Shown here in pieces: positions 10,254 through 34,900 of a DNA stretch of 64,000 bases (position 1 is the stretch's first letter; every line of letters begins with the position of its first letter). The position numbers and the translations under genes were made by a program. The stretch spans positions 372,001-436,000 of the forward strand of contig JALMLS010000304.1 of assembly GCA_038496445.1 (NCBI GenBank), read 5' to 3'. Under the pieces are notes generated by a model. The model made no database searches. It saw nothing but the letters and a program-made list of their open reading frames with translations, and was not told the origin of the DNA. This DNA comes from Trichosphaerium sp. ATCC 40318 (taxonomy: Eukaryota > Protista > Tubulinea).

Positions 10254-13200
10254 TTACAGTGTTGCAGTATTTACCGGTTGCGTTGAACTACCCATCCCTA
10301 CAGGAACTGACGTGGGACCTAAACTTGAGCCAGTTCGTGAATCTCTGGATAATTGTGCATCCATACAAGCACATGCAGGAGTCTTGTGAATAAAGAACGA
10401 GTTTACAGTGATTGCTAAAACAAATTAGATCTTTGTATAAATTCTTTTGTACCTGAACCAGATATGATACACATAGATACAATAATAAATCTTGTAAATC
10501 TATCAATATCTGTTGCAGCGAGTACAACACTCAACATTGCAAAGAAAGCAACATTGTACACTGTGAAGAAGATTATCTTAGATTCATTGTATCTCTTGAT
10601 TGGAATTGTTCTTATTCTAAATGCAAACACACTACAAACCAACAGTAGGCATGCCTAAAAATGTAGATAGTAAGTTCCTTAATACACCATATACAAACTG
10701 TACATTTGATGCAACTATGATGTACATGATAATTTCAAAAGCAGAATTGTATTTGCAAGAATGATAGTTCCGAAATACTCTGATTGAATCGACAACAATC
10801 ACTTCACTTGAAGAACTTCCAACAGTTGTCTGAAGTATTTAGTAACTCCATATTAGTACCAACGATGTACCATTATGACCAAGAGAATAACATGACAAAT
10901 GACAAGAGATCCAACCCACAAAAGAACCATCTTATCACTGATTCTTATCACTTGTGTTGTTTTCAATCGATACAATCTATCAAGACGAAGTGTTTTCCCA
11001 AGTAAGGGCCTACAAAACGGTAAGTAACATCAACAATAATTTAGTCAAGTACCCAAAGAGTAGAATGAAACCAATATCAAGAACCCAAATTGATGCATTA
11101 CATGTGAAATTGGAAACAACATTTGGAAGCAAAGTGAATACAGAGATGTACAACAACGAGCTTCCAACAATCATTAATCCCATGAATAAAGGTGATGACG
11201 CCTACAACAGTCATAAAGTCAGCAACAATAAATGGAGATCATGTACCTTGACTTTTTTGTTGCGAAGACTGAGAACAAGGAAAACAGCCCATCCTACATT
11301 GATACAAAAGAAAATGATGGCAACAATAGTTATGCATATTTCTGTCCAATGACCTGGTCAGGAAGTGATTAGCTTTTGTATTTACTGAAGATGTACCATA
11401 TTGTGGATGAAATATACGTTCATGCCATTTGGGCATTGGATAAATCAAGTCTGCAAGTTTTGTTGGAGGAGGTCCTATCAGAGTGAAACTACCTTTTTCT
11501 TGCATTTGAAGATGTAACCAATCCCTAATACAGTTTCAAAGACAACCTCTTCAATCTGATAATTTTCTTACCTTTGTTGAAATCCATCAACATCCCATGA
11601 GTATCGTCCAGCAAGTGTATCTTCTTTTAATCGGAACATGTTGTCATGTATTATTTCGTCAATCTATGTGTTGTGTTATGAAGAGATAAAATAAAGAATC
11701 AATAAAATCTAAAGTGTACAGTCTTATCTGTACAGGCAGTGGTTGAGATAGAAGAAGCGAGTTGTATTGATGAGTTGGTATTCAACTTATTGATAAAACG
11801 TTAGTGATCGTGGTACATACACTTTGGCTTCCACGTACAACGATAGCATCTCCATAGTCTACCACTGCTTTTTTAATCGCTTTGTTGAGTAACGATAAAA
11901 GAATAGCATAGGTGGTGAAGTCGCTGTTAAGGTCTTTTCCATGTCTCTTTTTGAATCCATCATTAAGTTGTGAATAGTTTCCATATTCTGCCGTTGCAGG
12001 GAACTTCATATCTGCCGAATACTGCCCAACAATAAGTACATACAAATATAAAATAGAACATACCTGAGACTCAGCACTGATATAGTGCCATAGATTCATG
12101 TCCAGATTAACTAGCCTACTTGCTTCCGCATCTGTAAAACCAACATATCTTGGGGTGTAGTCTTCTTTACGAAGGGTATCCATAATCAATCCAACAGCAT
12201 CCCATTGTTTACTACAAATAAACCTGGAAAGTGTCAGAGGTTTTAATTTTATTTTCGTATGTGTAAGGACATACCATGCATCAGCGTCATCCTCTTTTGC
12301 CATCAGAGCTATTTTTGATATGTTCTTAGTCACAGATTCTGAGAAGTTACCAAAGGGTACAGCTAGAAAAGCCTGACGAGCATCAGCATCAACTAAACAA
12401 AATAAGATTGTATTCAAGATGTACAACGTACATTCCACGGCATATTCAGATTTGATGGTGAATCCTTGTAATCGTAACTCATCTCTGAATAGTTTACTCG
12501 AGCACCTTTTCAGTCACATAAGCTAGACGGTGAGAATAAAACGGGAAGCGTACATTGTTCCAAATATATTCTCATCAGAATAAATTAATGTCACTGTTTT
12601 CGCACCAACGACACGTAATGGTGGTAAAGCTGCAAAGAAACCTCGTTCTCTTGGAAGTCCAACACTGAGACAACAAGATGTTCCATTTGCTTGTTCATTG
12701 AATTTGTTGCTTCCTGATACTAGCATTGGACAAGCATTAGAGAAATTAAGTTCTTTGCAATCACTAAACCATATGCTTACGTAGTAGTCGTTTTTTCTGT
12801 TCCATAAATTCAATGATAGGAGGGCTGTGGTCTACAACCACAGGGCTAACAAAAAAGGAAATAGAAGAGTCATTCAACCCTTTCTCGTATATTTCTTTCG
12901 TGTAATTTAAATTATAATATGAATTGATAAGCCTGTTACAATTCGTGAGTATTACCATTGTTGTATTACTAACTGTCCTTGCATAAAAGAACGTACTTTA
13001 AATTCAACCTAATCCTCTCCCCTCCTATCGTGACCGGAGTGTCTTGTTCAACTAATAGATCCGAAAAGTACTCCAAAGTATTCCTTGTCCAGTAAGCACG
13101 AAATAATACAAGAAAATCTGTACTCTAAATCCAATATAACGGCTTCAAAGTCCGGCGTCCACGCTCCAACTTGTACTAACGAACGTGAGAAACGTACAGG

Positions 13201-13586
13201 CAATAGTATTTTGAAGCAAAAAAACGCCTGGATAGTTTGTTAACGTGCTACGTTAACACACGCAGTAAACCAGGCGAATTTTCAAATACTACAGCACCAG
13301 CGTAAGCCGTAAGTGTAGTGGCTGTAGGAAAAAAAACCAAATGAGGATTGTACGGCTTTCAGAGTTATAGACATGTATTGTTAAAACACGCTACCGTCTA
13401 AGCAACACGTGATATGTTTGGTCCAAAGATAGTTGTTCAAAAATAATTAGAAAGAGGCTAAAAATTTCCTCGTAGAGTGGCTAACGCACGTATTGTTATG
13501 TTTTTGACTGCAAAAGCATCCGGAATAGTCAGCAATCCAATAAATATTACAATCATACTTAAAACTCTCGTGTTGAATGCACGCAT
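10254..13586 (-). CDS. Class C (family 3, GABA-B/Grl-like) GPCR, copy 1; 18 exons
   Basis: Signal peptide MRAFNTRVLSMIVIFIGLLTIPDAFA, periplasmic-binding-protein-like ectodomain, YPMPKWHER linker, 7TM motifs ASSPLFM, LLGKTLR and YNESK. All 17 introns spliced in frame. Confidence 0.9.
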
Positions 13587-13675
13587 GGCTATTTAACAAG
13601 CTAAGGTTCTAAATAAGACGAACGGACGATGACCGAAACGAAAATGCGTCTAAAAAGAAAATGAAGCTATGTTCG

Positions 13676-13870
13676 TTGTAGAACACGTGATTATATTCTA
13701 AACGTGCTATGCATCAAATTGTTACAAGTCGTACGTAGTATTGAGTTTGGAAGAATTGCCGCTTTTAGATATCGTCCAACGTGATATCTTATTGTATAAC
13801 GCTGTGAATACGCGTCAACAATACTACGGGCTCGTAAAAAAAGTGACATTGAATTAAATTTGTGAACTAC
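13676..13870 (-). promoter_or_regulatory. Conserved upstream block of the GPCR genes (CACGTG box plus GTAGTTCACAA motif), repeated before all six copies
   Basis: The + strand motifs tgtagaacacgtgatta and ttgtgaact recur at similar spacing near 13680, 17425, 21122, 25627, 30226 and 35303. Confidence 0.55.
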
Positions 13871-14023
13871 AACGTGTAGTTTGTGAACTGGTTTAAACAC
13901 TATCTACATTGCCTCTCCAACAAGTGCGGTTAATTAGGCTTGGTTACGACACTTCAAGCGGAAAAAAATAACATGGAGAGCAATTGTTTAATGTTTATTT
14001 TTCCATGAACCAACCTACCTTTT

Positions 14024-17000
14024 TTAAACGGTACACGGTTGCGTTGAACTGCCCATTTTAGGAGTTGTAATGCGAGTTACACTTGAACCGGCTCGTGAAT
14101 CTCTGGACAATTGTGTATCCATACAAACACATGCAGGAGTCTTGTGAATAAAGAACGAGTTTACAGTGATTGCTAAAAGTACATTAGATTGTTGTATGAA
14201 CACTTTTTTTGGTATAACCTACCTGAACCAGAAATGATACACATAGATACAATAATAAATCTTGTAAATCTATCAATATCTGTTGCAGCGAGTACAACAC
14301 TCAACATTGCAAAGAAAGCAACATTGTACACTGTGAAGAAGATTATCTTAGATTCATTGTATCTCTTGATTGGAATTGTTCTTATTCTGAATGCAAACAC
14401 ACTACAAACCAACAATAGAAATGCCTAGAAGAAAAATATTTGATGAGTTCCTTATTACACCATATACAAGTCGTACATTTGATGCAACTATGATGTACAT
14501 GATAATTTCAAAAGCAGAATTGTATTTGCAAGAATGATAGTTCCGAAATACTCTGATTGAATCAACAACAATCACTTCACTTGAAGAACTTCCAACAGTT
14601 GTCTGAAATATTTAGTAACTTCATATTAGTACCAACGGTGTACCATTATGACCAAGAGAATAACATGACAAATGACAAGAGATCCAACCCACAAAAGAAC
14701 CATCTTATCACTGATTCTGATCACTTGTGTTGTTTTCAATCGATACAATCTATCAAGACGAAGTGTTTTCCCAAGTAAGGGCCTACAAAACGGGTAAGTA
14801 ATGTCAACAATAATTTAGTTGTCTAAGTATTAAGTACCCGAAGAGTAGAATGAAACCAATATCAAGAACCCAAATTGATGCATTACATGTGAAATTGGAA
14901 ACAACATTTGGAAGCAAAGTGAATACAGAGATGTACAACAACGAGCTTCCAAGAATCATTAATCCCATGAATAAAGGTGATGACGCCTAAAAAAGTCATA
15001 ATGGTTACATTAAAAGATGAAAGACCTTGACTTTTTTGTTGCCAAGACTGAGAACAAGAAAAACAGCCCATCCTACATTGATACAAAAGAAAATGATGGC
15101 AACAACAGTTACAAATATTTCTGTCCAATGACCTGATGATAACACGAGTTAGGTATTGGTATATTTCTAAAGATGTACCATATTGTGGATGAAATATACG
15201 TTCATGCCATTTGGGCATTGGATAAATCAAGTCTGCTAGTTTTGTTGGAGGAGGCCCTATCAAGGTGTAACGACCCTTTTCTTGAATCTGAAGATGTAGC
15301 CAATCCCTAATACGGTTTAATGTAAAAAGAGACAACTTCTTCAATCTGATAATTTTCTTACCTTTGTTGAAATCCATCAACATCCCATGAGTATCGTCCA
15401 GCAAGTGTATCTTCTTTGAATCGAAACATGTTGTCACGTATTATTTCGTCAATCTATTCGCTGTCGTGAGGATCAAAATACAATCTAAATAGTGTACGGT
15501 CTTATCTGCACAAGCACAGGTTGATGTAGAAGAAGTGAGTTGTATTGATGAGTTGGCATTCAACTTATTCAAAAAAGGTTAGCTGATTCATACACTTTAC
15601 TTCCATGACGTACAACAATAGCATCTCCATAATCTATCACTGCTTTTTTAATCGCTTTGTTGAGTAAAGATAGAAGAATAGCATAGCTGGTAAAATCGCT
15701 GTTGAGGTCTCTTCCATATCTCTTTTTGAATCCATCATTGAGTTGTGAATAGTTTCCATATTCTTCTGTTGCAGGGAATTTCATATCTGCCGAATACTGC
15801 CCAACAATAAGGACATAAAATATAAAATAGAACATACCTGAGACTCAGCACTGACATAGTGCCATAGATCCATATCCAGGTTAACTAACCTTCTTGCATC
15901 CGCATCTGTAAAACCAACATATCTTGGGGTGTAGTCTTCTTTACGAAGGGTATCCATAATCAATCCAACAGCGTCCCATTGTTTACTACAAATAAACCTG
16001 GAAAGTGTCAGAGGTTTTAATTTATTTTCGCAAGTGCAAAGACATACCATGCATCAGCGTCATCCTCTTTCGCCATCAGAGCTATTTTTGATATGTTCTT
16101 AGTCACAGATTCTGAGAAGTTACCAAAGGGTACAGCAAAATATAAGGATAAAGATGAAGCATTAACTATCGCAAAATAAGATTGTATTCAAGGTGTACAA
16201 CGTACACTCTACGGCATATTCAGATTTGATTGTGAATCCTTGTAATCGTAACTCATCTCTGAATAGTTTACTCGAGCACCTTTTCAGTCACATAAGCTAG
16301 ATGGTGAGAATAAAACGGAAACGTACATTGTTCCAAATATATTCTCATCAGAATAAATTAATGTCACTGTTTTCGCACCAACAACACGCAATGGTGGTAA
16401 AGCTGCAAAGAAACCTCGTTCTCTTGGAAGTCCAACACTGAGACAACAAGATGTTCCATTTGCTTGTTCATTGAATTTGTTGCTTGTTGACACTACACTG
16501 AAGCATCAGAGATATTAACTCTACAATAAAACACGTGCGTACACAGTAATCGTTTGTTCTGTTTCATAAATTCAATAATAGGAGGGTTGTGGTTTACAAA
16601 CGCAGGTCCAAGAAAAAAGGAAATTGATGAGTCGTTCAACCCTTTCTCGTATAATTCTTTCGTGTAATTTAAATTATGCTGTGCATTGATAAGCCTGTTA
16701 AAAATCGTGAGTTACCATTGAAATAAATAACTGTCATTCTTGCATTATAGAACGTACTTTAAATTCAACCTAAGCCTCTCCCCTCCTATCGTAACCGGAG
16801 CGTCTTGCTCAACTAACAGATCTGCAAAGTACACCAAAGCATCCCTTGCGCTGGTAAGGAGGAGAATACCACAAAAAAAAAACTGTACTGTAAATCCAAT
16901 ATGATGACCTCAAAGTCCGGTGTCCACGCTCCAACTTGTACTAAAACTAGGTAAGAAACGTACGAGCAAAAAACCGACAGAAAAGTTGGCGACATTTGCG

Positions 17001-17329
17001 CTACCAGGCGGATCTCAAACATTACAGAAAAAAAACAGCGCCAGTAAGTGTAATGGTTATAGGAAAGAAAAACCCAAATGAGGATTTTTTTTGTTTTGGA
17101 CCGTTTAGACAATGTATTTTAAAACATACTATCTCTAACCAACACGTGATACACGTTGGTCCAAAGATAGTTGTTCAAGTCAAAAATATTGGTAAACAGG
17201 TTTTAAATCTTGTCAAATAAGTTTCTACGCACGTATTGTTATGTTTTTGACCGCGACAGCATCCGTAATCGGCAACAATCCAATAAATATCACAATCATA
17301 TTTAATGCTATCGCGTAGTATGCACACAT
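14024..17329 (-). CDS. Class C GPCR, copy 2
   Basis: Same exon structure as copy 1; C-terminus ...SSTQPCTV*. One donor is weakened to GTCTTT. Confidence 0.85.
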
Positions 17330-17751
17330 GGTTTTTTAACGAGCTAAGGTTGAAATAAGATGAGGGGCGTTGCCAAAACGAAAACGTTTCGAAAACAGGA
17401 AATGAAGTTTGGTTTGTATATTGTAGAACACGTGATTACAATATAAACGTGCTCTACAGCAAATCGATAGAAGGCGTACGTAGTTGTATACTTTGTCGCG
17501 TTTGGTTATTGCCAGCTTGTCCAGTCGTTGTTTACAAGCTGTAAAACGTGTCAATAATACTACGGCTCAAACAAAAGTATGTAATTTGTGAACTAACTAC
17601 AAACTGGTAAACGATCAATCAATACAATACCTATGTCTGAAAAACATGTTTAGCTAGGCGCCGGTACCTTCAAGTAACACAAAATGACCTGGTGCCCAAA
17701 ATAAGTAGTGTGAGAATTTATTTAATTAGTCAAATAACAGAAGTTTGCTGT

Positions 17752-20700
17752 TTACATAGCACTATCTGTCGGTTGTGTTGAACTACCCGCTTTAGGTGTT
17801 GATGTACGACCTACACTAGAATCGGTTCGTGAATCTATGGACGCCTGTGCATCCATACAAACACATGCAGGGGTCTTGTGAATAAAGAACGAGTTTACAG
17901 TGATTGCTAAAAAGTACATTAGATTGTTGTATGAACACTTTTGTACCTGAACCAGAAATGATACACATAGATACAATAATAAATCTTGTAAATCTATCAA
18001 TATCTGTTGCAGCGAGTACAACACTCAACATTGCAAAGAAAGCAACATTGTAAACAGTGAAGAAGATTATCTTAGATTCATTGTATCTTTTGATTGGAAT
18101 TGTTCTTATTCTAAACGCAAACACACTACAAACCAACAATAAGGATGCCTAGAATAAAAATATTTGATGAGTTCCTTATAACACCATATACAAGTCGTAC
18201 ATTTGATGCAACTATGATGTACATGATAATTTCAAAGGCAGAATTGTATTTGCAAGAATGATAGTTCCGAAATACTCTGATTGAATCGACAACAATCACT
18301 TCACTTGAAGAACTTCCAACAGTTGTCTGAAATATTTAGTAACCTCAGTAGTATTAAACGGTGTACCATTATGACCAAGAGAATAACATGACAAATGACA
18401 AGAGATCCAACCCACAAAAGAACCATCTTATCACTGATTCTGATCACTTGTGTTGTTTTCAATCGATACAATCTATCAAGACGAAGTGTTTTCCCAAGTA
18501 AGGGTCTACAAACGGATAAGTAATGTCAACGATAATTTAGTCAAGTACCCAAAGAGTAGAATGAAACCAATATCAAGAACCCAAATTGATGCATTACATG
18601 TGAAATTGGAAACAACATTTGGAAGCAAAGTGAATACAGAGATGTACAACAACGAGCTTCCAAGAATCATTAATCCCATGAATAAAGGTGATGACGCCTA
18701 CAACAGTCATAAAGTAAGAAATACAGAACACAGTCATAGCTTACCTTGACTTTTTTGTCATGAAGATTAAGAACAAGGAAAACAGCCCATCCTACATTGA
18801 TACAAAAGAAAATGATGGTAACAACAGTTACAAATATTTCTGTCCAATGACCTGGTCAGGAAGTGATTAGCTTTTGTATTTACTGAAGATATACCATATT
18901 GTGGATGAAATATACGTTCATGCCATTTGGGCATTGGATAAATCAAGTCTGCTACTTTCGTTGGAGGAGGTCCTATCAGAGTGAAACTACCTTTTTCTTG
19001 CATTTGGAGATGTAACCAATCCCTAATACAGTTTCAAAGACGCTGTCAATCTTATAATTTTCTTACCTTTGTTGAAATCCATCAACATCCCATGAGTATC
19101 GTCCAGCAAGTGTATCTTCTTTGAATCGAAACATGTTGTCACGTATTATTTCATCAATCTATTTACTGTCGTGAGGATCAAAATAAAATCTAAATAGTGT
19201 ACGGTCTTATCTGCACAGGCAGTGGTTGAGATAGAAGAAGCGAGTTGTATTGATGAGTTGGCATTCAACTTTTCCAAAAAACGTTAGTGATCGTGGTACA
19301 TACACTTAGCGTTCACGTACAACAATAGCATCTCCATAATCTATCACTGCTTTTTTAATCGCTTTGTTGAGTAACGATAGAAGAATACCATAGCTGAGAG
19401 ATCCAGTGTCAAGGTCTATTCCATATCTTTCTTTATATCCATCATTGAGTTGTGAATAGTTTCCATATTCTGCCGTTGCAGGGAACTTCATATCCGCCGA
19501 ATGCTATGAAAAAATAACAATGTGCGAAAAACACTGTAGATACCTGAGACTCAGCAGTAACATAGTGCCATAAATCCATATCCACATGCTTTAATCTGCT
19601 AAGGACCGCATCTGTAAAACCAACATATCTTGGGGTGTAGTCTTCTTTACGAAGGGTATCCATAATCAATCCAACAGCATCCCATTGTTTACTACAAATA
19701 AACCTGGAAAGTGTCAGAGGTTTTAATTTAATTTTCGTATGTGTAAGGACATACCATGCATCAGCGTCATCCTCTTTTGCCATCAGAGCTATTTTTGATA
19801 TGTTCTTAGTCACAGATTCTGAGAAATTACCAAAGGGTACAGCACGAAAAACCTGACGAGCTGTAGCATCAACTAAACAAAATAAGTCTTTGTTTAATGG
19901 TACAACGTACATTCTATGGCATATTCAGATTTGATCGTGAATCCTTGTAATCGTAACTCATCTCTGAATAGTTTACTTGAGCACCTTTATGGACACAAAA
20001 TTAAACTGAGAATAAAATGGGAAACGTACATTACTCCAAAAATATTCTCATCAGAATAAATTAATGTCACTGTTTTCGCACCAACGACACGTAATGGTGG
20101 TAAAGCTGCAAAGAAACCTCGTTCTCTTGGAAGTCCAACACTGAGACAACAAGATGTTCCATTTGCTTGTTCATTGAATTTGTTGCTTGTTGACACTACA
20201 CTGAAGCATCAGAGATATTAACTCTACAATAAAACACGTGCGTACACAATAATCTCTTGTTCTGTTCCATTAATTCGATGATGTGAGGGTTGTGGTCTAC
20301 AACCACAGGTCCAACAAAAAAGGAAATAGAAGAGTCATTCAATCCTTTCTCGTATATTTCTTTCGTGTATGTAAAGTTAAACCGTGCATTCATAATTCTG
20401 TTACAATAATCATGTTAGTATTGTAATTGTTTTTAACACCTTGCATACAACGTACTTTACTTTCAACCTAAATCTCTCCCCTCCTATTGTAACCGGAGTG
20501 CCTTTTTCAACTAATAGATCTGCAAAGTACTCCAAAGCATTCCTAGCGCTGGTAAGGAGTAACATACTACAAAAAAAACCTGTACTTTAAATTATTTATG
20601 AGGAACTCTATGCTATCGGGCCACCCTCCCACTTGTACTTAAAAACAGAGTAAGAAAGATCATTTTTAATGTTTTGAACCGCTACATGATCGGGCGTTTA

Positions 20701-21039
20701 CACGCATGCACAGTGATCCACCGGAAAAGTAAAAAACGGCGAAAAACAACGTAAGAGACGGGAACCAAGGTGCAGGGGAAAAAACCCCAAATGAGATATG
20801 TGGCTTTGGAGTTTTAAACGATCTATTTTTATACCGTATTTCCCTTACCAGCACGTGATATGTGTTGGTCCAAAGGTAGTTGTTCAGGTCAAAAATGATT
20901 TGAAAAAAGGTTGTAAATCTCCTCATACAAGTTTCTACGCACGCATTGTTATGTTTTTGACTGCAAAAGCATCCGGAATAGTCAGCAATCCAATAAATAT
21001 CACAATCATATTTAATGCTCTCGTGTTTAATGCGCGCAT
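17752..21039 (-). CDS. Class C GPCR, copy 3
   Basis: Same exon structure; most divergent ectodomain patches; ends QPTDSAM*. Confidence 0.88.
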
Positions 21040-21922
21040 GGTTATTATCAAGCTAAAGTTCTAATAAGACGAATGAACGATGCTCAAAACGAAAACGAAG
21101 GGAATGCAGTTTGGTTCGTTGTAGACCACGTGATTACAACATACACGTCTAAGTCGTACTTAGTTGATCGAGTTGTTTTGTAGTCGCTTTTAGTATTTGG
21201 CCAGTCGTCCAAGTGTTTTATTAAGTTGTGAAACGTGTCAATAATACTACGCTTCTTAAAAAATTTGAGATACAACTTGTGAACTACAACGTGTAAACAC
21301 TAAAAGCCTCCGAAAACCGACATACCAACTGATAGGAACATACTGAGCGGCTAAAATCCGGAACGGATGAAACACCCGTGATAGGTTATGTACATTGCGA
21401 AATGTTGGATAGGTCGCCATGCCTTGTTTTACCGCAATGTTCGCACCTACCTACCATTAAAATTTAGTATGTTTAGCTATGACAATGTTCATGAGAATGG
21501 CTCCGCTTTTTGGCGTGGGTTACCGACAATTTTAATCAACTCATACACTACAAGATATCTTTTTGTGTGAAGAGTTTTGATAAATCCGAAGAAGTTAACT
21601 CCTCGCTAAAAAACAATTATACCTTATTTTGCCAACACTGCGCATAGAGGATGGCATTATTTCGACTCTTTGCGTGAGGTTATCGCAGAAAACTCAGAAC
21701 TTTTTCGTAACCCATGATCCTGCCTGAATGTATCTAAACAGTTAGACTAGGCATAAAAATACGCATACAGTGGCGGAAAGGTTTAACTTAAAATCGACAT
21801 TTAGAACTTTTGATAAAAAAAGCGTTTGCTCACATACGCATTTTTTTGTACAGTGGTTTTTGTGAAGGCCAAATTCGAAATTGTCATTGGCAACTTCGCT
21901 ATATTGTGTAGGCCCTCATAAA

Positions 21923-22152
21923 GTTGGTTCCTAAAGGCAACAAAGGTTGAAAAAGATGAAGTAAAACATGGTACGCTGATATCCAAGGTAGAGTGTTTGT
22001 TTACCCTTTGTCAATAGGTTTAACTAGGTTGTCAATGGCGTTTGAGACACGTGAAGAGTATCTTCTATAGAAAAAACCAGGCATATAATGGAAGATCAGT
22101 CAGGGTTGCATTAAAAGCTGGCTACAAGCTTTTAAGGTCTACTACAACAAGG
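21923..22152 (+). pseudogene. Duplicated internal fragment (exon-intron-exon) of the 8071-10135 gene
   Basis: gttggttcctaaaggcaacaaaggttg...ctacaacaagg matches ~9099-9320, including the intron. Confidence 0.9.
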
Positions 22153-22186
22153 CATACGCCAAAACAAAATACTAATAAAATTTGTT

Positions 22187-25100
22187 TTATATATCCTTAT
22201 ACAGTGTTGCACTATCTGCAGGTTGTGTTGAACTGCCCCTCCCTTTTGTAGTTGATGCACGGCCCATACTTGAGCCAGTGTGGGAATCTTTGGACAATTG
22301 TGTATCCATACAAGCACATGCAGGAGTCTTGTGAATAAAGAACGAGTTCACAGTGATTGCTAAAAACAATTAGATCTTTTGTATAAATTCTTTTGTACCT
22401 GAACCAGAAATGATACACATAGATACAATAATAAATCTTGTAAATCTATCAATATCTGTGGCAGCGAGTACAACACTCAACATTGCAAAGAAAGCAACAT
22501 TGTACACAGTGAAGAAGATTATCTTAGATTCATTGTATCTCTTGATTGGAATTGTTCTTATTCTGAATGCAAACACACTACAAACCAACAATAAGGATGC
22601 CTAAAACAAAACAATTTGATGAGTTCCTTATAGCACCATTATAAAAGTCGTACATTTGATGCAACTATGATGTACATGATAATTTCAAAGGCAGAATTGT
22701 ATTTGCAAGAATGATAGTTCCGAAATACTCTGATTGAATCGACAACAATCACTTCACTTGAAGAACTTCCAACAGTTGTCTGAAGTATTTAGTAACTCCA
22801 TATTAGTACCAAAGATGTACCATTATGACCAAGAGAATAACATGACAAATGACAAGAGATCCAACCCACAAAAGAACCATCTTGTCACTGATTCTGATCA
22901 CTTGTGTTGTTTTCAATCGATACAATCTATCAAGACGAAGTGTTTTCCCAAGTAAGGGCCTACAAAAGCGTAAGTAACATCAACAATAATTTAGTCAAGT
23001 ACCCAAAGAGTAGAATGAAACCAATATCAAGAATCCAAATTGATGCATTACATGTGAAATTGGAAACAACATTTGGAAGCAAAGTGAATACAGAGATGTA
23101 CAACAACGAGCTTCCAAGAATCATTAATCCCATGAATAAAGGTGATGACGCCTAAAACAGCCTTAATGGTTACTGTAAAAGATGAAAGAGTTACTACATA
23201 CCTTGACTTTTTTGTTGCGAAGACTGAGAACAAGGAAAATAGCCCATGCTGCATTGATACAAAAGAAAATGATGGCAACAATAGTTACAAATATTTCCGT
23301 CCAATGACCTGGTCAGGAAGTGATTAGCTTTTGTATTTACTGAAGACATACCATATTGTGGATGAAATATACGTTCATGCCATTTGGGCATTGGATAAAT
23401 CAAGTCTGCCAGTTTTGTTGGAGGAGGTCCTATCAGAGTGAAACTACCCTTTTCTTGCATTTGAAAATGTAACCAATCCCTAATACAGTTTCAAAGACCT
23501 GTCAATCTTATATTTTTCTTACCTTTGTTGGAACCCATCAACATCCCATGAGTATCGTCCAGCAAGTGTATCTTCTTTTAATCGGAACATGTTGTCACGT
23601 ATTATTTCATCAATCTACGTCATGTTATAAAGAATCAAAATAAAATCTAAATAGTGTACGGTCTTATCTGCGCAAGCACAGGTTGATGTAGAAGAAGTGA
23701 CTTGTATTGATGAGTTGCCATTCAACTTATTGATAAAACGTTAGTGATCGTGATACATACACTTTACTTCCATCACGTACAATAATAGCATCTCCATAGT
23801 CTATCACTGCTTTTTTAATCGCTTTGTTGAGTAGTGAAAACAGAATAGCAAAGGTGGTAAAGTCGCTGTTAAGGTCTCTTCCATGTCTCTTTTTGAATCC
23901 ATCATTAAGTTGTGAATAGTTTCCATATTCTGCCGTTGCAGGGAACTTCATATCCGCAGAAAACTACAGAAAACAATTTCAATGTGCTAAAAAACATAAA
24001 ATAGAACATACCTGAGACTCAGCAGTAACGTATTGCCATAGATCCATGTCCAATCGTATTACCCTGTTTGGAGTTGCATCTGTAAAACCAACATATCTTG
24101 GGGTGTAGTCTTCTTTACGAAGGGTATCCATAATCAATCCAACAGCGTCCCATTGTTTACTACAAATAAACCTGGAAAGTGTCATAGGTTTTAATTTATT
24201 TCGTATGTGTAAGGACATACCATGCATCAGCGTCATCCTCTTTCGCCATCAGAGCTATTTTTGATATGTTCTTAGTCACAGATTCTGAGAAATTACCAAA
24301 GGGTACAGCAATGTACGCTATACGAGCCTCAGCATCAACTAATAGAATAAGATTGTATTCAAGGTGTACAACGTACACTCTACGGCATATTCAGATTTGA
24401 TAGTGAATCCTTGTAATCGTAACTCATCTCTGAATAGTTTACTTGAGCACCTTTATGGACACAAAATCAGACAGTAAGTAAACGTTGAGAATTGATAGTA
24501 AGAATAAAATGGGAAACGTACATTGTTCCAAAAATATTCTCATCAGAATAAATTAATGTCACTGTTTTCGCACCAACGACACGTAATGGTGGTAAGGCTG
24601 CAAAGAAACCTTGTTCTCTTGGAATTCCAACACTGAGACAACAAGATGTTCCATTTGCTTGTTCATTGAATTTGTTGCTTGTTGACACTACACTGAAGCA
24701 TCAGAGATATTAACTCTACAATAGAACATGTGCCTACACAATAATCGTCTGTTATGTTCCATTAATTCAATAATAGGAGGGCTATGGTTTACAAACGCAG
24801 GGCTAATAAAAAAGGAAATAGAAGAGTCGTTCAACCCTTTCTCGTATATTTCTTTCGTGTATGTACTGTTAAACTGTCCATTGATAAGCCTGTTACAATA
24901 TCGTGAGTACTACCAGCGTTGAATAAACCTGCCACATTGCGTTGTACGTACTCATATTTCAACCTATATTTCTCCCCTCCTATTGTGACCGGAGCGTCTT
25001 GATCAACTATTAGATCTGAAAAGTAGTCCACAGAATCCCTTGCGATGGTAAGGAGAAAATTGCAATAATAATTTGTACTTTAAATCATATATGAAGCTCT

Positions 25101-25525
25101 CAAACCCGTTGGACCACGCTCCCACTTGTACTAATATAAAGTGAAAAACACGTAGTCGTTGTTTTTAAAGCAACTAAAACTCCTGAACAGTTACACGCTT
25201 TCTGTGTAAGTAAATAAGGCGGATTTCTAACACCATAGTAAAAACAGCAAAGGTGAATCATAACGGGAAAACATCGGAAGCTTTTTGGTTTTGGAGTTTT
25301 TACCCCGATGTATTTTTAAAACGCGCTACCCCTTACCAACACGCGATATGCGTTGGTCCAAAGATAGTTGCTCAGGTCAAAAATAATTAGAAAAGGCAGT
25401 AAATCTCCTCATACAAGTGTTTACGCACGTATTGTTATGTTTTTGACTGCAAAAGCATCCGGGATAGTCAGCAATCCAATAAATATTACAATCATACTCA
25501 ATCCCCTCGTGTTTATTACACACAT
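22187..25525 (-). CDS. Class C GPCR, copy 4
   Basis: Same exon structure; the usual TAA is TAT here, extending the tail to ...ATLYKDI*. Confidence 0.88.
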
Positions 25526-26593
25526 AGTTACTAGAAAGCTAAGGTTGAAATAAGATGAATGAACGTTGCCGAAACGAAAGAAAAATCGCCAAAAACGACA
25601 AGCCAGAAAATGAGGCGATCTCCGTTGTAGAACACGTGATTACATTATAAACGTGCTCTACATCAACAAATCGCTAAAAGTCGTACTTAGTTGTATTCAC
25701 TCTGTTTTATTCGCTTGTTATCGCTTTTAGCTATTGGCCAGGTATTCCAGGTGTTGTTGTATTAAGCTGTAAAAACGTGTCAACAATACTGCGCTTCTAA
25801 TAAATTTGACATACAGTTTGTGAACTACACCTACAAACCTCCGAAAGCTGACAGGCCAACTGAAAGGAACATAATAGGCGGCAACAATAGGGTCGGATGA
25901 AACACATCCAGTACAGGACGAAATGATAGGATATGTACATTGTGAATGTTGGTTAGGGCGGCATGCCTTGTTTTAAAGCTATGTTCAAACTTACCACTAA
26001 AGGAAGTGTTAGGTTTAAGCCATTTTTTCTAACCTCTGTGAGTGCTCCCAATACGCTGTTTTACGCTTAAGGAAACGTTTTATAATACTCATTATCCCAA
26101 ACTGTGTGTCATTGTAAAACGTATTTTGTAGACACAAAGAACGTTTGTACACCTTATTATTGAGCGTCTAAAGTATGTATCAATGGGTTTTATGTGGTTA
26201 ACAGCCTTCAGTGCTGTTTGTGGTTGAACGAACTTTTTCATCTAAGTTACGCTACAGCAGCACTCTATTGGCATTTTAAATTAAATTAGAGTATTAAAAC
26301 AGTTCCAGCACAACTACAATACAATGAATTGCCCGTACAAATTCAAAAGAGTAAATACCATTCAAAATAGAAGCAGTTTTATCAGTGTAGGATAACCAGG
26401 GCTAGACAAGTCATTTTCATCGTGTTGCATTTGATCACGTGTCAAAAATAATAAATTTCTTAAAAGTGGTACGAAATCTATTACAGAGCTTTGTTGTATG
26501 ATAAAAACATCCACAATTACGGTGTCTGTTCCAACAAGTAAAAGTAGAGCTTTGAGTGAATCTGTTTCCTGAAAATGAGAATGGCGCGTAGGT

Positions 26594-26765
26594 TAATGTT
26601 TTAGTGCAATGAAGTTCGATCGTTTGATGAAATAGAGTCGCAAGGACTCTGCTCGCTTTTTCTTCGTCAATACGAAGAAATAAATCTGGGGATTGATGTG
26701 CTTCAGGATTGGCCATTATCGTTAACTATCCAGTGGTTTGCTCCTTTGATGAAGAAGGCCAAATT
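26594..26765 (-). pseudogene. Decayed fragment of the hydrolase gene at 35861-37803
   Basis: Encodes ANPEAHQSPDLFLRIDEEKASRVLATLFHQTIE, near-identical to ~35960-36110, with a 1-nt insertion upstream of ANPEA. Confidence 0.9.
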
Positions 26766-26839
26766 TGACGATTTTGGCAAGGTGAGCTTGAAAAAGTCTA
26801 CAACAAGGTGTACGCTAAACAAGATTTATTTTCACTCTT

Positions 26840-29800
26840 TTACAGTGTTGCAGTATTTATCGGTTGTGTTGAACTACCCATCCCTACAGGAGCTGACGTG
26901 GGACCTAAACTTGAGCCAGTTCGTGAATCTCTAGACAATTGTGTATCCATACAAGCACATGCAGGAGTCTTGTGAATAAAGAACGAGTTTACAGTGATTG
27001 CTAAAAGTACATTAGATTGTTGTATGAACACTTTTGTACCTGAACCAGAAATGATACACATAGATACAATAATAAATCTTGTAAATCTATCAATATCTGT
27101 TGCAGCGAGTACAACACTCAACATTGCAAAGAAAGCGACATTGTACACTGTGAAGAAGATTATCTTAGATTCATTGTATCTTTTGATTGGAATTGTTCTT
27201 ATTCTGAATGCAAACACACTACAAACCAACAGCAAGAATGCCTAAAATAAAAATGTATCTGGTGAGTTCCTTAATACATTATACAAGTCGTACATTTGAT
27301 GCAACTATGATGTACATGATAATTTCAAAAGCAGAATTGTATTTGCAAGAATGATAGTTCTGAAATACTCTGATTGAATCGACAACAACCACTTCACTTG
27401 AAGAACTTCCAACAGTTGTCTGAAATATTTAGTAACCTCAGTAGCATTAAGCGAGTGTACCATTATGACCAAGAGAATAACATGACAAATGACAAGAGAT
27501 CCAACCCATAAAAGAACCATCTTATCACTGATTCTGATCACTTGTGTTGTTTTCAATCGATACAATCTATCAAGACGAAGTGTTTTCCCAAGTAAGGGCC
27601 TATAAACGGGTAAGTGTCAACAATAATTTAGTTGTCTAAGTACCCGAAGAGTAGAATAAAACCAAGATCAAGAACCCAAATAGATGCATTACATGTGAAA
27701 TTGGAAACAACATTTGGAAGCAAAGTGAATACAGAGATGTACAACAATGAGCTTCCAACAATCATTAATCCCATGAATAAAGGTGATGACGCCTACAACA
27801 GTCATAAAGTCAGCAACAATAAATGGAGATTATGTACCTTGACTTTTTTGTTGCCAAGACTGAGAACAAGGAAAATAGCCCATCCTACATTGATACAAAA
27901 GAAAATGATGGCGACAATAGTTACAAATATTTCCGTCCAATGACCTGGTCAAGAAGTGATTAGCTTTTGTATTTACTGAAGATGTACCATATTGTGGATG
28001 AAATATACGTTCATGCCATTTGGGCATTGGATAAATCAAGTCTGCCAGTTTCGTTGGAGGAGGTCCTATCAGAGTGAAACGACCCTTTTCTTGCATTTGA
28101 AAATGTAACCAATCCCTAAACATTGTTTTAAAAAGATACAATCTTCAATCTGATAATTTTCTTACCTTTGTTGAAATCCATCAACATCCCATGAATATCG
28201 TCCAGCAAGTGTATCTTCTTTGAATCGAAACATGTTGTCATGTATTATTTCGTCAATCTATGTGTTGTGTTATGAAGGGATAAAAATACAATCTAAATAG
28301 TGTACGGTGTTATCTGCACAGGCACTGGTTGAGATAGAAGAAGTGACTTGTATTGATGAGTTGGCATTCAACTTTTCCAAAAAAAGTTAGTGATCGTGAT
28401 ACATACACTTAGCGTTCACGTACAACAATAGCATCTCCATAATCTATCACTGCTTTTTTAATCGCTTTGTTGAGTAACGATAAAAGAATAGCATAGGTGG
28501 TAAAGTCGCTGTTGAGGTCTCTTCCATGTCTCTTTTTGAATCCATCATTAAGTTGTGAATAGTTTCCATATTCTGCCGTTGCAGGGAACTTCATATCCGC
28601 AGAAAACTACAGAAAACAATTTCAATGTGCTAACAAACATAAATGGGACATACCTGAGACTCAGCAGTAACGTATTGCCATAGATCCATGTCCAATCGTA
28701 TTAACCTGTTTGGGGTTGCATCTGTAAAACCAACATATCTTGGGGTGTAGTCTTCTTTACGAAGGGTATCCATAATCAATCCAACAGCATCCCATTGTTT
28801 ACTACAAATAAACCTGGAAAGTGTCAGTTTTAATTTATTTCGTATGTGTAAGGACATACCATGCATCAGCGTCATCCTTTTTCGCCATCAGAGCTATTTT
28901 TGATATGTTCTTAGTCACAGATTCTGAGAAGTTACCAAAGGGTACAGCAATGTACTCTATAAGAGCCTCAGCGTCAACTAGCAGAATAAGATTGTATTCA
29001 AGGCGTACAACGTACACTCTATGGTATATTCAGATTTGATTGTGAATCCTTGTAATCGTAACTCATCTCTGAATAGTTTACTTGAGCACCTTTATGGATA
29101 CAAAATCAGACAGTAAGAATAAAACGGGAAACGTACATTGTTCCAAAAACATTCTCATCAGAATAAATTAATGTCACTGTTTTAGCACCAACAACACGTA
29201 ATGGTGGTAAAGCCGCAAAGAAACCTCGTTCTCTTGGAAGTCCAACACTGAGACAACAAGATGTTCCATTTGCTTGTTCATTGAATTTGTTGCTTGTTGA
29301 CACTACACTGAAGCATCAGAAATATTAACTCTACAATAAACAGGTGCGCACACAGTAATCGTTTTTTCTCTTCCATTAATTCAATAACAGGAGGGCTATG
29401 GTTTACAACAGCAGGTCCAACAAAAAAGGAAATAGAAGAGTCGTTCAAACCTTTCTCGTATAATTCTTTCGTGTATGTACTGTTAAACTGTCCATTGATA
29501 AGCCTGTTACAATATCGTGAGTACTACCAGCGTTGAATAAACCTGCCACATTGCGTTGTACGTACTCATATTTCAACCTATATTTCTCCCCTCCTATTGT
29601 GACCGGAGCGTCTTGATCAACTATTAGATCTGAAAAGTAGTCCAAAGAATCCCTTGCGCTGGTAAGGAGAAAATTGCCAATAATAATTTGTACTTTAAAT
29701 CTAATATGAAGCTCTCAAACTCCTTGGACCACGCTCCCACTTGTACTAATATAAAGTGAGAAACACGTAGTCGTTGTTTTTAAAGCAACTAAAACTCCTG

Positions 29801-30128
29801 AACAGTTACACAGTAAATAAGGCGGATTTCTAACACCATAGTAAAAACAGCAAAGGTGAATCATAACGGGTAAACATCGGAAGCTTTTTGGTTTTGGAGT
29901 TTTTACCCCGATGTATTTTTAAAACGCGCTACCCCTTACCAACACGTGATACGCGTTGGTCCAAAGATAGTTGCTCAGATCAAAAATGATTAGAAAAGGC
30001 AGTAAATCTCCTCATACGAGTGTTAACGTACGTATTGTTATGTTTTTGACTGCGAAAGCATCCGGAATAGTCAGCAATCCAATAAATATTACAATCATAC
30101 TTAATACTCTCGTGTTTAATACACACAT
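26840..30128 (-). CDS. Class C GPCR, copy 5
   Basis: Same exon structure; N-terminal half closest to copy 4; ends QPINTATL*. Confidence 0.88.
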
Positions 30129-31089
30129 GGCTACTAGCAAGCTAAGCTTAAATAAGATGCATGAACGTTGCCCGAAACGAAAAATCGTCAAAAACGACAA
30201 GCCAGAAAATGAAGCGATCTTCGTTGTAGAACACGTGATTACATTATAAACGCGCTCTACATCAACACATTGCCAGAAGTCGTACTCAGTTGTATTCACT
30301 CTGTTTTATTCGCTTGTAATCGCTTTTATCTAGTATTCCAGTTGTACTACGCTGTAAAAACGTGTCAACAATATACTACGTGCTTGTAAAAATTTAGACT
30401 TGTAGTTTGTGAACTGGCAAATGGCTGACTAAAACACAATAGCTACAATGTCTCCGAAAAATATGTTTGTAAGACGTTTTGAGTAATGTGATGTATTGAG
30501 CCATTTCATTATTACTATGGTGAGAAAACGTACTGCCAGCTATCAACTATTTTTTGCATAGTAACTTTTATTTTCACAATTTCCAAAGGTACTGTCGATA
30601 AGCTCGGTTTTCTGGTGTTTTCATATTCTGACTTTGCGGAAAAACAAGTTTTTATGAGAACATGCTCTAAACCTCAATACGGATAACATGAACCACTCTT
30701 TAGCTGCTCACATACGTGCTCTTGAATATGATAAACTAATAAATGATTTGCAGCACATGTTACTCTCCGCCTCCCGAAAGTGACATTGCTGGAGTCCATA
30801 TTTTCCTACGTTCATAACCCTGGGCGTTATAGGATAACAAAAGCCGGTAACCTCAGTAGTTTGAGGCACCAATGTTGTATTCAGAGCCTCAAACAACATG
30901 TTGGAACAGCGTGTAGCCTTTCCGGCTGTCGACTCTGTACGCACGCACATATACTGTTTTTTTAAGGGTGCGGTATCGATGGGATTGATAACGTTTCTGT
31001 TCGAGTGTTTAGCGTAAAGGCTTTGTCACTGTTCCTTTCTCGACAAAAAAAAAACTGGAAAAAAACTGGCTTTGCTGAGTTTCCTTATC

Positions 31090-31923
31090 TATTGTCCGTA
31101 TCATTCAAGTTTGCTAATCTTTGCAACTTTTTGCTGTTTGTGACTTTTGATTTTCGAGTTTAGTCAGATCTGACAGATCTTGCAAGTTCTGTTAGTTCTT
31201 ACAGAACTGACAATTTTGCTAGAACTAGCAGACCCAACGTTTGAAATGTGATTCACGTTATTGAAGGCTTGCTAGGCGGAAAAATCATGAATTTGCACTG
31301 GCCACGTGATTTTAAAAACCCACCTAACATTTATTTTATTTTACAATAATATGGTTACATGGTGTCCGTACCACAATATCGCCTCCAGAGATACTTTGAG
31401 CGCTTTTGGAATTAATCTTTACGGTTTTTTCCCGTTGATACGCCTCTTGACGGTTTTTTCCCCGTTGATACGCCTCTTGACGGTTTTTTCCCCGTTGACG
31501 CCTCTTGACGCTATGATTGTGTCAGCACTAGCGCGTGGCGGCGTAGTACGTTAGGCAACAAATAACAAGTAATTCGTACCTTTTGGTCTTGTTCGGCTCC
31601 TTTGGGCGCTTCTATGGTGAGTGTAGCATTTACAAGCGCACTTACGCAAAATACTGCGATAGTCTTGTTAGATGATGTGACTTTGACATTGTATTTTTTT
31701 CTTGCCTTAAGGTACATAAGCACGGCAAGCAAGGTACATTGACTGGAGTTGTGGAATGTGATGCATTCACATTGCACTGAACCTTCAAGTTTTTAACAGA
31801 TCTGACAGAACTTACAAGAACTAGCAAAAGTGACAAGATCTGACAGATCTGTTACTTCTTGCAAGATCTTACACTTTGATACTTCTGCCAAACCTGTCGC
31901 AAACTTGAATGATACGTACAATA
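31090..31923. mobile_element. Non-autonomous TIR DNA transposon (MITE-like), ~830 bp
   Basis: 25-bp terminal inverted repeats, tattgtccgtatcattcaagtttgc (31090-31114) and gcaaacttgaatgatacgtacaata (31899-31923), 24/25 match. Subterminal cagatctgacag and agaactagca repeats at both ends; no transposase ORF. Confidence 0.8.
31421..31510. repeat. ~30-bp tandem repeat x3 inside the MITE-like element
   Basis: Unit acggttttttccccgttgatacgcctcttg repeated three times with small indels. Confidence 0.95.
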
Positions 31924-31953
31924 CATGCTAAAACAACCTTTATTTTCACTCTT

Positions 31954-34900
31954 TTACAGTGTTGTACTATCTACTGGTTGTGTCGAACTACCCATCCCTA
32001 CAGGAGCTGATACACGACCTAAACTTGAGCCAGTTCGTGAATCTCTAGACAATTGTGCATCCATACAAGCACATGCAGGAGTCTTGTGAATAAAGAACGA
32101 GTTTACAGTGATTGCTAAACGTACATTAGATTGTTGTATGAACACTTTTGTACCTGAACCAGAAATGATACACATAGATACAATAATAAATCTTGTAAAT
32201 CTATCAATGTCTGTGGCAGCGAGTACAACACTCAACATTGCAAAGAAAGCAACATTGTACACAGTGAAGAAGATTATCTTAGATTCATTGTATCTTTTGA
32301 TTGGAATTGTTCTTATTCTAAACGCAAACACACTACAAACCAACAATAGAAATGCCTAAAATAAAAATATATCTGGTGAGTTCCTTAATACATTATACAA
32401 GTCGTACATTTGATGAAACTATGATGTACATGATAATTTCAAAAGCAGAATTGTATTTGCAAGAATGATAGTTCCGAAATACTCTGATTGAATCAACAAC
32501 AATCACTTCACTTGAAGAACTTCCAACAGTTGTCTGAAATATTTAGTAACCTCAGTAGCATTAAGCGAGTGTACCATTATGACCAAGAGAATAACATGAC
32601 AAATGACAAGAGATCCAACCCACAAAAGAACCATCTTGTCACTGATTCTGATCACTTGTGTTGTTTTCAATCGATACAATCTATCAAGACGAAGTGTTTT
32701 CCCAAGTAAAGGTCTGCAAGGGGATAAGTAACATCAACAATAATTTATGTCTAAGTATTAAGTACCCGAAGAGTAGAATGAAACCAATATCAAGAATCCA
32801 AATTGATGCATTACATGTGAAATTGGAAACAACATTTGGAAGCAAAGTGAATACAGAGATGTACAACAACGAGCTTCCAACAATCATTAATCCCATGAAT
32901 AAAGGTGATGACGCCTAAAAAAGTCATAATGGTTACAGTAAAAGATAAAAGAGTTACTACATACCTTGACTTTTTTGTTGCCAAGACTGAGAATAAGAAA
33001 AACAGCCCATCCTACATTGATACAAAAGAAAATGATGGCAACAACAGTTATGAATATTTCTGTCCAATGACCTGATATAACAAATTAGATGATTGATTGT
33101 ATCAAAGATGTACCATATTGTGGATGAAATATACGTTCATGCCATTTGGGCATTGGATAAATCAAGTCTGCCAGTTTCGTTGGAGGAGGTCCTATCAGAG
33201 TGAAACGACCCTTTTCTTGCATTTGAAAATGTAACCAATCCCTAAACATTGTTTTAAAAAGATACTCAATCTGATAATTTTCTTACCTTTGTTGAAATCC
33301 ATCAACATCCCATGAGTATCGCCCAGCAAGTGTATCTTCTTTGAATCGAAACATGTTGTCATGTATTATTTCGTCAATCTATGTGTTGTGTTATGAAGGG
33401 ATAAAAATACAATCTAAATAGTGTACGGTCTTATCTGCACAGGAACTGGTTGAGATAGAAGAAGTGAGTTGTATTGATGAGTTGGCATTCAACTTTTCCA
33501 AAAAAAGTTAGTGATCGTGATACATACACTTAGCGTTCACGTACAACAATAGCATCTCCATAATCTATCACTGCTTTTTTAATCGCTTTGTTGAGTAACG
33601 ATAGAAGAATACCATAGCTGAGAAAGTCGCTGTTGAGGTCTCTTCCATGTCTCTCTTTGAATCCATCATTGAGTTGTGAATAGTTTCCATATTCTGCTGT
33701 TGGAGGGAACTTCATATCGGGTGAATACTGCCCAACAATAAGTACGTACAAATATAAAATAGAACATACCTGAGACTCAGCACTGACATAGTGCCATAGA
33801 TCCATATCCAGGTTAACTAACCTTCTTGCATCCGCATTTGTAAAACCAACATATCTTGGGGTGTAGTCTTCTTTACGAAGGGTATCCATAATCAATCCAA
33901 CAGCATCCCATTGTTTACTACAAATAAACCTGGAAAGTGTCAGAGGTTTTAATTTAATTTTCGTATGTGTAAGTACATACCATGCATCAGCGTCATCCTC
34001 TTTCGCCATCAGAGCTATTTTTGATATGTTCTTAGTCACAGATTCTGAGAAATTACTAAAAGGTACAGGAATATATGTGTTTAAAGATGAAGCATTAACT
34101 ATCACAAAATAAGATTGTATTCAAGGTGTACAACGTACACTCCATGGCATATTCAGATTTGATTGTGAATCCTTGCAATCGTAACTCATCTCTGAATAGT
34201 TTACTCGAGCACCTTTTCAGTCACATAAGCTAGATGGTAAGAATAAAACGGGAAAACGTACATAACTCCAAACAGATTCTCGTCAGTATAAATTAATGTC
34301 ACAGTTTTAGCACCAACAACACGTAATGGTGGTAAAGCCGCAAAGAAACCTCGTTCTCTTGGAAGTCCAACACTGAGACAACAAGATGTTCCATTTGCTT
34401 GTTCATTGAATTTGTTGCTTGTTGACACTACACTGAAGCATCAGAGATATCAACTCTACAATAAACCAGATACGTACACAGTAATCGTCTGTTTTGTTCC
34501 ATTAATTCAATGATGTGGGGATTATGCTCTACAATAGCAGGGCTAATAAAAAAGGAAATAGAAGAGTCATTCAACCCTTTCTCGTATATTTCTTTCGTGT
34601 ATGTGAAATTGTAATTTGTATTGATTATTCTAGTGCAATCGTGAGTACCATTGTATACCTGTCATCCTTGTATTATATGTACTCGTATTTCAACCTAAAT
34701 TTCTCCCCTCCTATTGTGACCGGAGCATCTTGTTCAACTAACAGATCCGAAAAGAAGTCCGCAGAATCCCTTGGCGCTTGTTAGAGAAAAATATCACAAA
34801 AAAAAACACAATAATAATCTGTACTTTAAATCTAATATAAAACTCTCAAACTCCTTGGGCCACGCTCCCGCTTGTACTACAACAAAGTAAGAAACGCCAT

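Follow-up and report, generated by a model that had tools for sequence, protein, structure and literature searches.

Conflicting genealogies in a tandem array of six class C receptor genes of the amoeba Trichosphaerium are probably a record of repeated short-tract gene conversion

How can six neighbouring genes, all of them intact, be related to each other through several mutually exclusive genealogies at once? The question is raised by a tandem array in the marine amoeba Trichosphaerium, found in a window of 64,000 nucleotides (C15:372001–436000 of a 70.3-Mb genome in 642 contigs; positions given herein are those of the window unless a contig is named). Six intact direct-repeat gene copies lie on the minus strand with a coding span of 10254–35197, and they make up a tandem array, old in origin, of genes for class C G-protein-coupled receptors (GPCRs). 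The original prediction, made from the letters of the window, had placed the array at 10400–34900, which was right as to its location although the coding span proved to be slightly wider, and had proposed that intron and exon variants reassort between the copies and that short-tract gene conversion appears to shuffle specificity modules into new receptors. We found that the genes are indeed mosaics, and we consider it likely, with a probability of roughly 0.75, that these arose through repeated interlocus gene conversion in short tracts (≈100–570 bp) among diverged tandem copies, with the switches mostly falling in conserved exons. The results thus support short-tract conversion, whereas the new receptors, the adaptive part of the proposal, are a plausible possibility.

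The repeat units occupy the region from 10.2 to 35.5 kb and start 3.77, 3.72, 4.45, 4.64 and 5.11 kb apart. With a splice model built jointly on the six copies, which demands that GT and AG be conserved throughout the alignment and that the frame be open in every copy, each gene could be resolved into 18 exons and 17 introns, giving products of 748–756 amino acids, with 16 of the introns being 38–71 nt long and the first one 227–314 nt. The reading frames were intact in all six copies across the 102 splice junctions.

Five introns had been named in the original prediction as grouping the copies in incompatible ways, and each of those groupings (Table 1) was borne out by the alignment: that of the last intron (intron 17) by six sites with zero conflict, those of intron 15 in the loop after transmembrane helix 4 (TM4), intron 13 between TM1 and TM2 and intron 12 after the PQYG motif by seven sites each, and that of intron 5 after the IFGTM motif by six sites. 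The coding patches listed together with them were also present, with NASSL in exon 7 shared by copies 2 and 6, TPNR in exon 8 by copies 4 and 5, HNPH in exon 4 and LSYG in exon 9 both by copies 3 and 6, and WTPDFE in exon 2 by copies 1 and 2. The accompanying statement that neighbouring introns are mutually incompatible held for six of the ten pairs of the five named splits, but not for introns 17 and 15, 17 and 12, 13 and 12, or 12 and 5, the compatible neighbours among the named splits thereby being 17/15 and 13/12. Since a tree with six leaves can hold at most three such splits, the five cannot share one tree. Further splits were seen in introns 16 and 10 (both grouping copies 1, 5 and 6 against 2, 3 and 4), intron 11 (1, 3 and 4 against 2, 5 and 6), intron 9 (1, 2 and 4 against 3, 5 and 6) and intron 8 (1, 2, 3 and 6 against 4 and 5), and when all introns are counted, conflict between neighbours is the rule.

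Statistical analyses of the six-copy alignment (3110 ungapped columns with 761 polymorphic and 355 informative sites) gave the same picture. Overall identity between the copies was 84–92%, while the identity of one pair could swing from about 50% to 99% along the gene (120-column sliding window). All of the 25 possible bipartitions of six copies occurred, and 51% of the informative-site pairs were incompatible, to be compared with 24–32% in simulations upon a single maximum-likelihood (ML) tree having the observed spatial clustering of rates. Nearby sites conflicted less than distant ones, with a pairwise homoplasy index (PHI) z of −21.9 and none of 2000 permutations as low; the single-tree null gave PHI z values from −3.3 to +1.6, about −0.6, against −24 for the observed data in that comparison. 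A four-gamete count (Rm = 105) was discarded, because recurrent mutation inflates such a count at this divergence. Parsimony segmentation over all 105 topologies, with blocks 95–570 columns long, found 13 tree switches at a penalty of 4 (shuffled data: mean 5, maximum 11) and seven at a penalty of 6 (shuffled data: mean 0.8, maximum 4).

ML trees of ten blocks, determined using IQ-TREE, disagreed with high ultrafast-bootstrap support, and the approximately unbiased (AU) test rejected the whole-alignment tree in six of the ten (B4, B5, B6, B7, B8 and B10, with p from 0.005 to 1e-78), in agreement with the earlier claim that no single duplication tree explains the array. Most blocks also rejected most of the other blocks' trees, with log-likelihood differences of 20–140. 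A GENECONV-type permutation check pointed in the same direction, yielding 21 shared fragments that were significant after Bonferroni correction (p ≤ 0.05) and came from 12 of the 15 copy pairs, a count that also takes in intron-internal runs in which just one or two copies deviate.

How are the conflicts distributed along the genes? The 5′ quarter (exons 1–4 and their introns), having a proportion of synonymous differences (pS) of 0.25 and a proportion of intron differences (intron p) of 0.25, gave the tree ((1,2),3,(6,(4,5))), which corresponds to the physical gene order and was supported by ultrafast-bootstrap values of 86–100 in block B1. On the data of that block only the tree of B3 survived, marginally (p 0.026), with the trees of the other blocks being rejected at p < 1e-7. 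The gene-order tree is retained in the 5′ quarter only, where we read it as the surviving duplication history; the mosaic begins at intron 4 and runs downstream. Copies 4 and 5 are 90–99% alike from the upstream flank to approximately column 2100 (≈2 kb), and beyond this point each of them matches other copies, a switch of partners that implies several replacements after or around the event behind their similarity.

Exons and introns differed clearly in these respects. Along the gene, pS ranged from 0.00 to 0.57, and it was 0.00 in all six copies over stretches of 18–24 codons. The seven-helix exons 13–17 are 90–100% identical in the six copies, with a pS of 0.08 as compared to an intron p of 0.20; pS drops to 0.00 in several windows of exons 14 and 15, and the introns within the same region split into two to five classes. 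Alternative intron alleles differ by 20–50%. The informative introns are coherent (0–10% conflicting pairs in introns 8, 11, 12, 13, 15 and 17), and the exons hold scattered conflicting sites. Of the site pairs at most 60 columns apart, 8% conflicted when both sites lay in the same intron, 28% when they lay in the same exon and 39% when they lay in different segments. These values give an effect size and not a strict test, as the pairs are non-independent and those in introns are spaced more closely. Perfect identity between two copies extended over 181 bp at most, and among the six copies there was no preference for sharing between neighbours.

Table 1. Positions of the six genes of the array and of selected parts of copy 1 (window coordinates).
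Feature	Position	Strand	Description
Copy 1	10254–13586	minus	Class C GPCR gene, 18 exons, 752 aa
Copy 2	14024–17329	minus	Gene model as copy 1, 748 aa
Copy 3	17752–21039	minus	Gene model as copy 1, 750 aa
Copy 4	22187–25525	minus	Gene model as copy 1, 756 aa
Copy 5	26840–30128	minus	Gene model as copy 1, 752 aa
Copy 6	31954–35197	minus	Gene model as copy 1, 751 aa
Copy 1, exons 1–4	12781–13586	minus	Signal peptide and start of ectodomain; diverged 5′ quarter
Copy 1, exons 13–17 and introns	10453–11353	minus	Seven-helix domain
Copy 1, intron 5	12506–12553	minus	After IFGT; groups copies 1, 2, 6 against 3, 4, 5
Copy 1, intron 12	11354–11396	minus	After PQY/G; groups copies 1, 3, 4, 5 against 2, 6
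Copy 1, intron 13	11202–11246	minus	TM1–TM2; groups copies 1, 3, 5 against 2, 4, 6, with tight classes 1, 5 and 2, 4, 6
Copy 1, intron 15	10830–10870	minus	After TM4; groups copies 1, 2, 4 against 3, 5, 6
Copy 1, intron 17	10415–10452	minus	Last intron; groups copies 1, 4 against 2, 3, 5, 6

By which process could such genes have formed? The closest other sequence in the genome has at most 69% identity, in the seven-helix part only, and with no closer genomic copy the donors of any exchange would be the six copies themselves. We suggest that the copies first diverged, by up to about 50% in introns and about 25–35% at synonymous sites, whereupon the 3′ three-quarters of the genes would have traded short stretches by non-allelic homologous recombination, mainly as non-reciprocal interlocus gene conversion, the tracts having the length given above. 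Near-identical sequence would be needed both to begin and to end an exchange, with its success depending upon local identity. Conserved exons, chiefly those of the seven-helix domain, could in this manner have served as landing sites, with the result that even their synonymous positions were homogenised, and the short diverged introns together with the few variable ectodomain patches would have moved as entire blocks or stayed in place. Each segment would then be a small coalescent of six lineages in which drift has left one to four classes, or 'alleles', with each gene ending as a unique mosaic. The notion in the original prediction that conversion is anchored in invariant exons agrees with the switches being located mainly outside introns, and the exon blocks having zero synonymous difference in all six copies fit conversion anchored in conserved exons. 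That conversion was involved rather than crossover, as well as the timing proposed here, is what we infer from these patterns.

Some points weigh against gene conversion as the explanation, or against the strength of the evidence for it. The direction and the non-reciprocity of exchanges are not visible from one genome, the mosaic is known here from the assembly alone, and protein and metagenome collections gave no transcript or contig of the six genes. The AU tests were run on blocks picked after seeing the data; the log-likelihood differences are, however, far beyond the effect of such a post hoc choice. The GC content at third codon positions (GC3) was not raised where the genes are homogenised, being 0.32 in exons 13–17, 0.29 in exons 5–12 and 0.40 in exons 1–4. 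A signature of GC-biased conversion is not universal, and the missing rise in GC3 thus weakens the case for conversion but does not exclude it. Finally, the published Trichosphaerium draft that is the probable source assembly (70.87 Mb, GC 37.7%, mean intron 75 nt) was produced from whole-genome-amplified DNA using Canu, three rounds of Pilon and Redundans (PMC10521059). Some real differences between the copies may have been lost to Pilon where the exons are most conserved, which would exaggerate the blocks with zero pS.

Could reciprocal unequal crossing-over instead be the main cause, either through hybrids formed upon expansion and contraction of the array or through recombination of diverged array haplotypes? 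Direct repeats located 3.7–5.1 kb apart favour unequal exchange, the ≈2 kb shared by copies 4 and 5 with the upstream flank ends in one clear switch near column 2100, and the spacers hold relics of flanking sequence. Most patches are short (95–570 bp), however, with differing relationships on both sides, so that two crossovers per patch would be needed; with some ten or more switches in the 2.6 kb of each copy, many changes in copy number would be implied, and the sharing is without bias to adjacent copies. From the relics in the longer spacers, and from the single clear end of the similarity between copies 4 and 5, we conclude that unequal crossing-over has contributed. It surely helped to build the array but gives a poor account of the many short two-sided patches, and it is unlikely to be their main cause.

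With regards to the spacers themselves, a 175-bp piece below copy 5 (26610–26780) is 93% identical to 35953–36126, inside the gene upstream of copy 6, and a 235-bp piece below copy 4 (21923–22156) is 83% identical to 9099–9323, about 1 kb below copy 1. These pieces probably remain from segmental duplications through which the array arose, and such relics may explain why some spacers are longer than others (1.1–1.8 kb as compared to 0.4 kb).

Another possibility is that the exchanges were kept or favoured by selection, as mixing of ectodomain patches would give new ligand specificities. It is plausible that new receptor specificities would arise from conversion. Variable patches of about ten residues reassort within otherwise invariant ectodomain exons, being shared by copies 2 and 6, 1 and 3 or 4 and 5 at the start of exon 7, by copies 1, 2 and 6 or 4 and 5 in exon 8, where copy 3 stands alone, and by copies 3 and 6 in exon 9. 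The combination of patches is unique to each copy, and the ratio of the proportions of nonsynonymous and synonymous differences (pN/pS) is near 1 in several of them. On the other hand, no 12-codon window had pN clearly over pS, the top ratios being 1.1–1.4, and regional pN/pS was 0.19–0.55, below 1 in each region; ratios of 1.1–1.4 in a few windows fit relaxed constraint as well as they fit selection. Much of the conflict signal is, furthermore, found at introns and synonymous sites, where it leaves the protein unchanged, and neutral divergence-dependent conversion predicts the same pattern (bioRxiv 10.1101/2025.10.29.685298). We therefore regard selected combinatorial diversification as improbable in explaining the mosaics.

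A third alternative is that the true copies are tree-like and that the patches derive from assembly or polishing, through reads mis-assigned by Pilon, chimeric amplified molecules or mixing in the consensus. The probable source of the assembly, made using Canu on Nanopore and PacBio reads of DNA amplified with REPLI-g followed by the polishing mentioned above (PMC10521059), would have allowed for such errors, and duplicate contigs elsewhere show the assembly to be imperfect. Yet the intact frames in six copies over 17 GT–AG introns speak for good base accuracy, and the patches are clean blocks instead of site-wise mixtures. Shared tracts usually hold private differences, while pasting from one pool of reads would make identical tracts, and with intron alleles 20–50% apart, 150-bp read pairs should be placed uniquely. 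In addition, another class C receptor array of the same assembly, having four genes (C36:158850–181550; L004, L006 and L005), is mostly tree-like (198 of its 241 informative sites), grouping copies A and B against C and D, which argues that the pipeline alone makes no patchwork. An artefact is thus very unlikely to explain the mosaic. Very unlikely, too, is a working combinatorial system, in which frequent conversion, possibly mitotic and unequal from nucleus to nucleus in a multinucleate amoeba, would continually set new mixtures of ectodomain patches upon an unchanging signalling domain, selection would widen the range of sensed ligands and the short diverged introns would act as barriers between exchangeable modules.

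Considering duplicates in the assembly, matches to the 7tm_3 domain occurred as pairs with equal scores and lengths on the contigs C14/C114, C327/C527, C132/C404, C223/C279, C10/C486 and C144/C402, which points to leftover duplicates that may be haplotigs. The six-gene array itself has no duplicate elsewhere in the genome.

What kind of receptors do the six genes encode? Copy 1, when read across exons, matched 7tm_3 (PF00003) at 40.9 bits (cut-off 33.5; C15:382454–383005), with single exons giving 32 and 18.3 bits. An exhaustive protein search using the 243-aa open frame of copy 1 found a spliced relative of 229 aa (P0001) in the Trichosphaerium sp. ATCC 40318 transcriptome MMETSP0405, having a cluster mate of 696 aa (P0003) from a JGI contig. 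P0003 is colinear with the peptides of exons 3–18 without insertion at any junction, its seven-helix part (7tm_3 at 112.8 bits) aligns exon by exon with copies 1–6, and the exon-wise genome matches of P0001 stop within a few bases of the borders of exons 11 and 12. Both proteins matched a paralogue on another contig (C27:115027–115890; 86–92% identity) and not to the six array genes; they consequently support the gene model by homology but are silent on expression of the array. Word-based protein searches using the open frames of copy 1 (243 aa) and copy 5 (133 aa) gave no match, and a search with full-length P0003 gave other paralogues only. As the protein searches yielded only paralogues, no transcript of the six array genes is on record. 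A scan of metagenome contigs with exon 17 gave no match, and a search for contigs encoding P0001 gave none. That the two proteins match the C27 paralogue at only 86–92% suggests either that ATCC 40318 is not the same as the sequenced isolate, or that their true counterpart is absent from the assembly.

The 243-aa open frame (11785–12513) exists because introns 6–8 of copy 1 lack stop codons and preserve the frame. In copies 5 (27001–27039) and 6 (32115–32153) the same holds for the last intron, which has 39 nt, and keeping any of these introns would add residues to the protein rather than truncate it. A splice model based upon copy 1 alone was dropped, several introns of that copy being stop-free and in frame, and an intron-free paralogue on contig C9, tried as a guide protein, gave no tblastn match and was too distant for gene modelling.

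The ectodomain is probably a divergent Venus flytrap of periplasmic-binding-protein type without a cysteine-rich linker. Peripla_BP_6 matched P0003 at 25.1 bits (E 1.8e-5), which is below the cut-off of 31.7, and P0001 at 17.1 bits, and a feature search with the copy 1 open frame led to ANF_receptor and Peripla_BP_6 clusters at 0.90, to be taken as a lead only. Exon by exon, the ectodomain of copy 1 gave no Pfam match, and six-frame genome scans with PF13458 and PF01094 gave none at the array locus. The NCD3G cysteine-rich linker was found neither in P0003, at E up to 0.1, nor in exons 11–12 of copy 1 (exon 10 was not scanned), and the linker exons 10–12 are poor in cysteines. This linker is typical of the branch of metabotropic glutamate, calcium-sensing and taste receptors and is absent from the GABA-B branch. 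With no NCD3G match and few linker cysteines, the predicted layout resembles that of the GABA-B-like branch.

The repertoire to which the array belongs is very large for a genome of 70 Mb, with at least 141 six-frame 7tm_3 matches genome-wide and 112 exon-level matches of P0001 spread over many contigs. The intron-free frame on C9 (653 aa at about 157.0–159.0 kb; L001:1551–3509, minus strand) combines PBP_like_2 (75 bits) with 7tm_3 (67.8 bits), and hence represents a class C receptor having a type II binding-protein ectodomain of the phosphate-binding-protein type instead of the usual Venus flytrap.

How does the array compare with other gene families shaped by conversion? Regional gene conversion has been described in the protocadherin clusters of fugu, zebrafish and human (PMC1852091, citing Noonan et al. 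2004), which likewise are tandem arrays of surface receptors having a diverged 5′ ectodomain and a 3′ part that is homogenised even synonymously, with the consequence that trees have to rest on the 5′ part only. The variable exons of protocadherins are, however, single large exons, whereas 17 mini-introns here reassort as neutral markers; GC3 is increased in converted regions of the fugu genes (PMC1852091) but not in the amoeba array, and the homogenised part is one uniform block in the protocadherins but a patchwork of several classes in the amoeba. For the HMA4 genes of Arabidopsis halleri, which form a tandem triplet, divergence-dependent conversion was both modelled and observed (bioRxiv 10.1101/2025.10.29.685298). 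Conversion together with purifying selection there results in nonsynonymous divergence being lower than synonymous, and synonymous lower than intron divergence, with effective conversion rates varying within the gene, and the same contrast between exons and introns is seen here. The HMA4 copies are nevertheless three and young, with long introns that simply diverge, while the amoeba array has six old copies whose very short introns have moved between them, giving two to four shared intron classes and conflicting groupings. For the GOT1 paralogues of the copepod Tigriopus californicus, conversion is reported to yield novel combinations while islands of divergence persist (PMC3728101); the two systems are alike in that paralogue conversion makes new combinations, and differ in that GOT1 is a metabolic enzyme with few copies and the amoeba genes are a receptor array.

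Within the same genome, the four genes of the C36 array have seven-helix blocks that are 90–99% identical among the copies and flanking parts at 55–70%. They are thereby similar to the six genes in being tandem class C receptors with a homogenised seven-helix domain, but the patchwork of the six-gene array is much denser. Local homogenisation of the signalling domain accordingly seems to be general in this genome. In the VSG, var and chicken immunoglobulin systems, an archive of silent or pseudogene donors feeds an expressed copy. The present array differs in having six intact frames and no further genomic copy above 69% identity, hence no such archive of silent donors.

Gene conversion among tandem receptor genes is a textbook process, and the array is a very clean new example of it and not a new mechanism; in a limited search of the literature we found no report of conversion in amoebozoan receptor arrays. 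What the locus offers is an unusually legible record of conversion, with 17 very short introns acting as neutral barcodes and at least about 13 changes of genealogy packed into 3.4 kb of the six-gene alignment. The array would also mean that homologous exchange between paralogues has been active in an amoeba with a debated sexual cycle. In practical terms, trees of the Trichosphaerium class C receptor family, with its more than 140 7tm_3 matches, should be built from the 5′ ectodomain only. If the reassorting patches contact ligand, the array would furthermore provide a simple model of how gene conversion may diversify receptors while keeping their signalling domain uniform.

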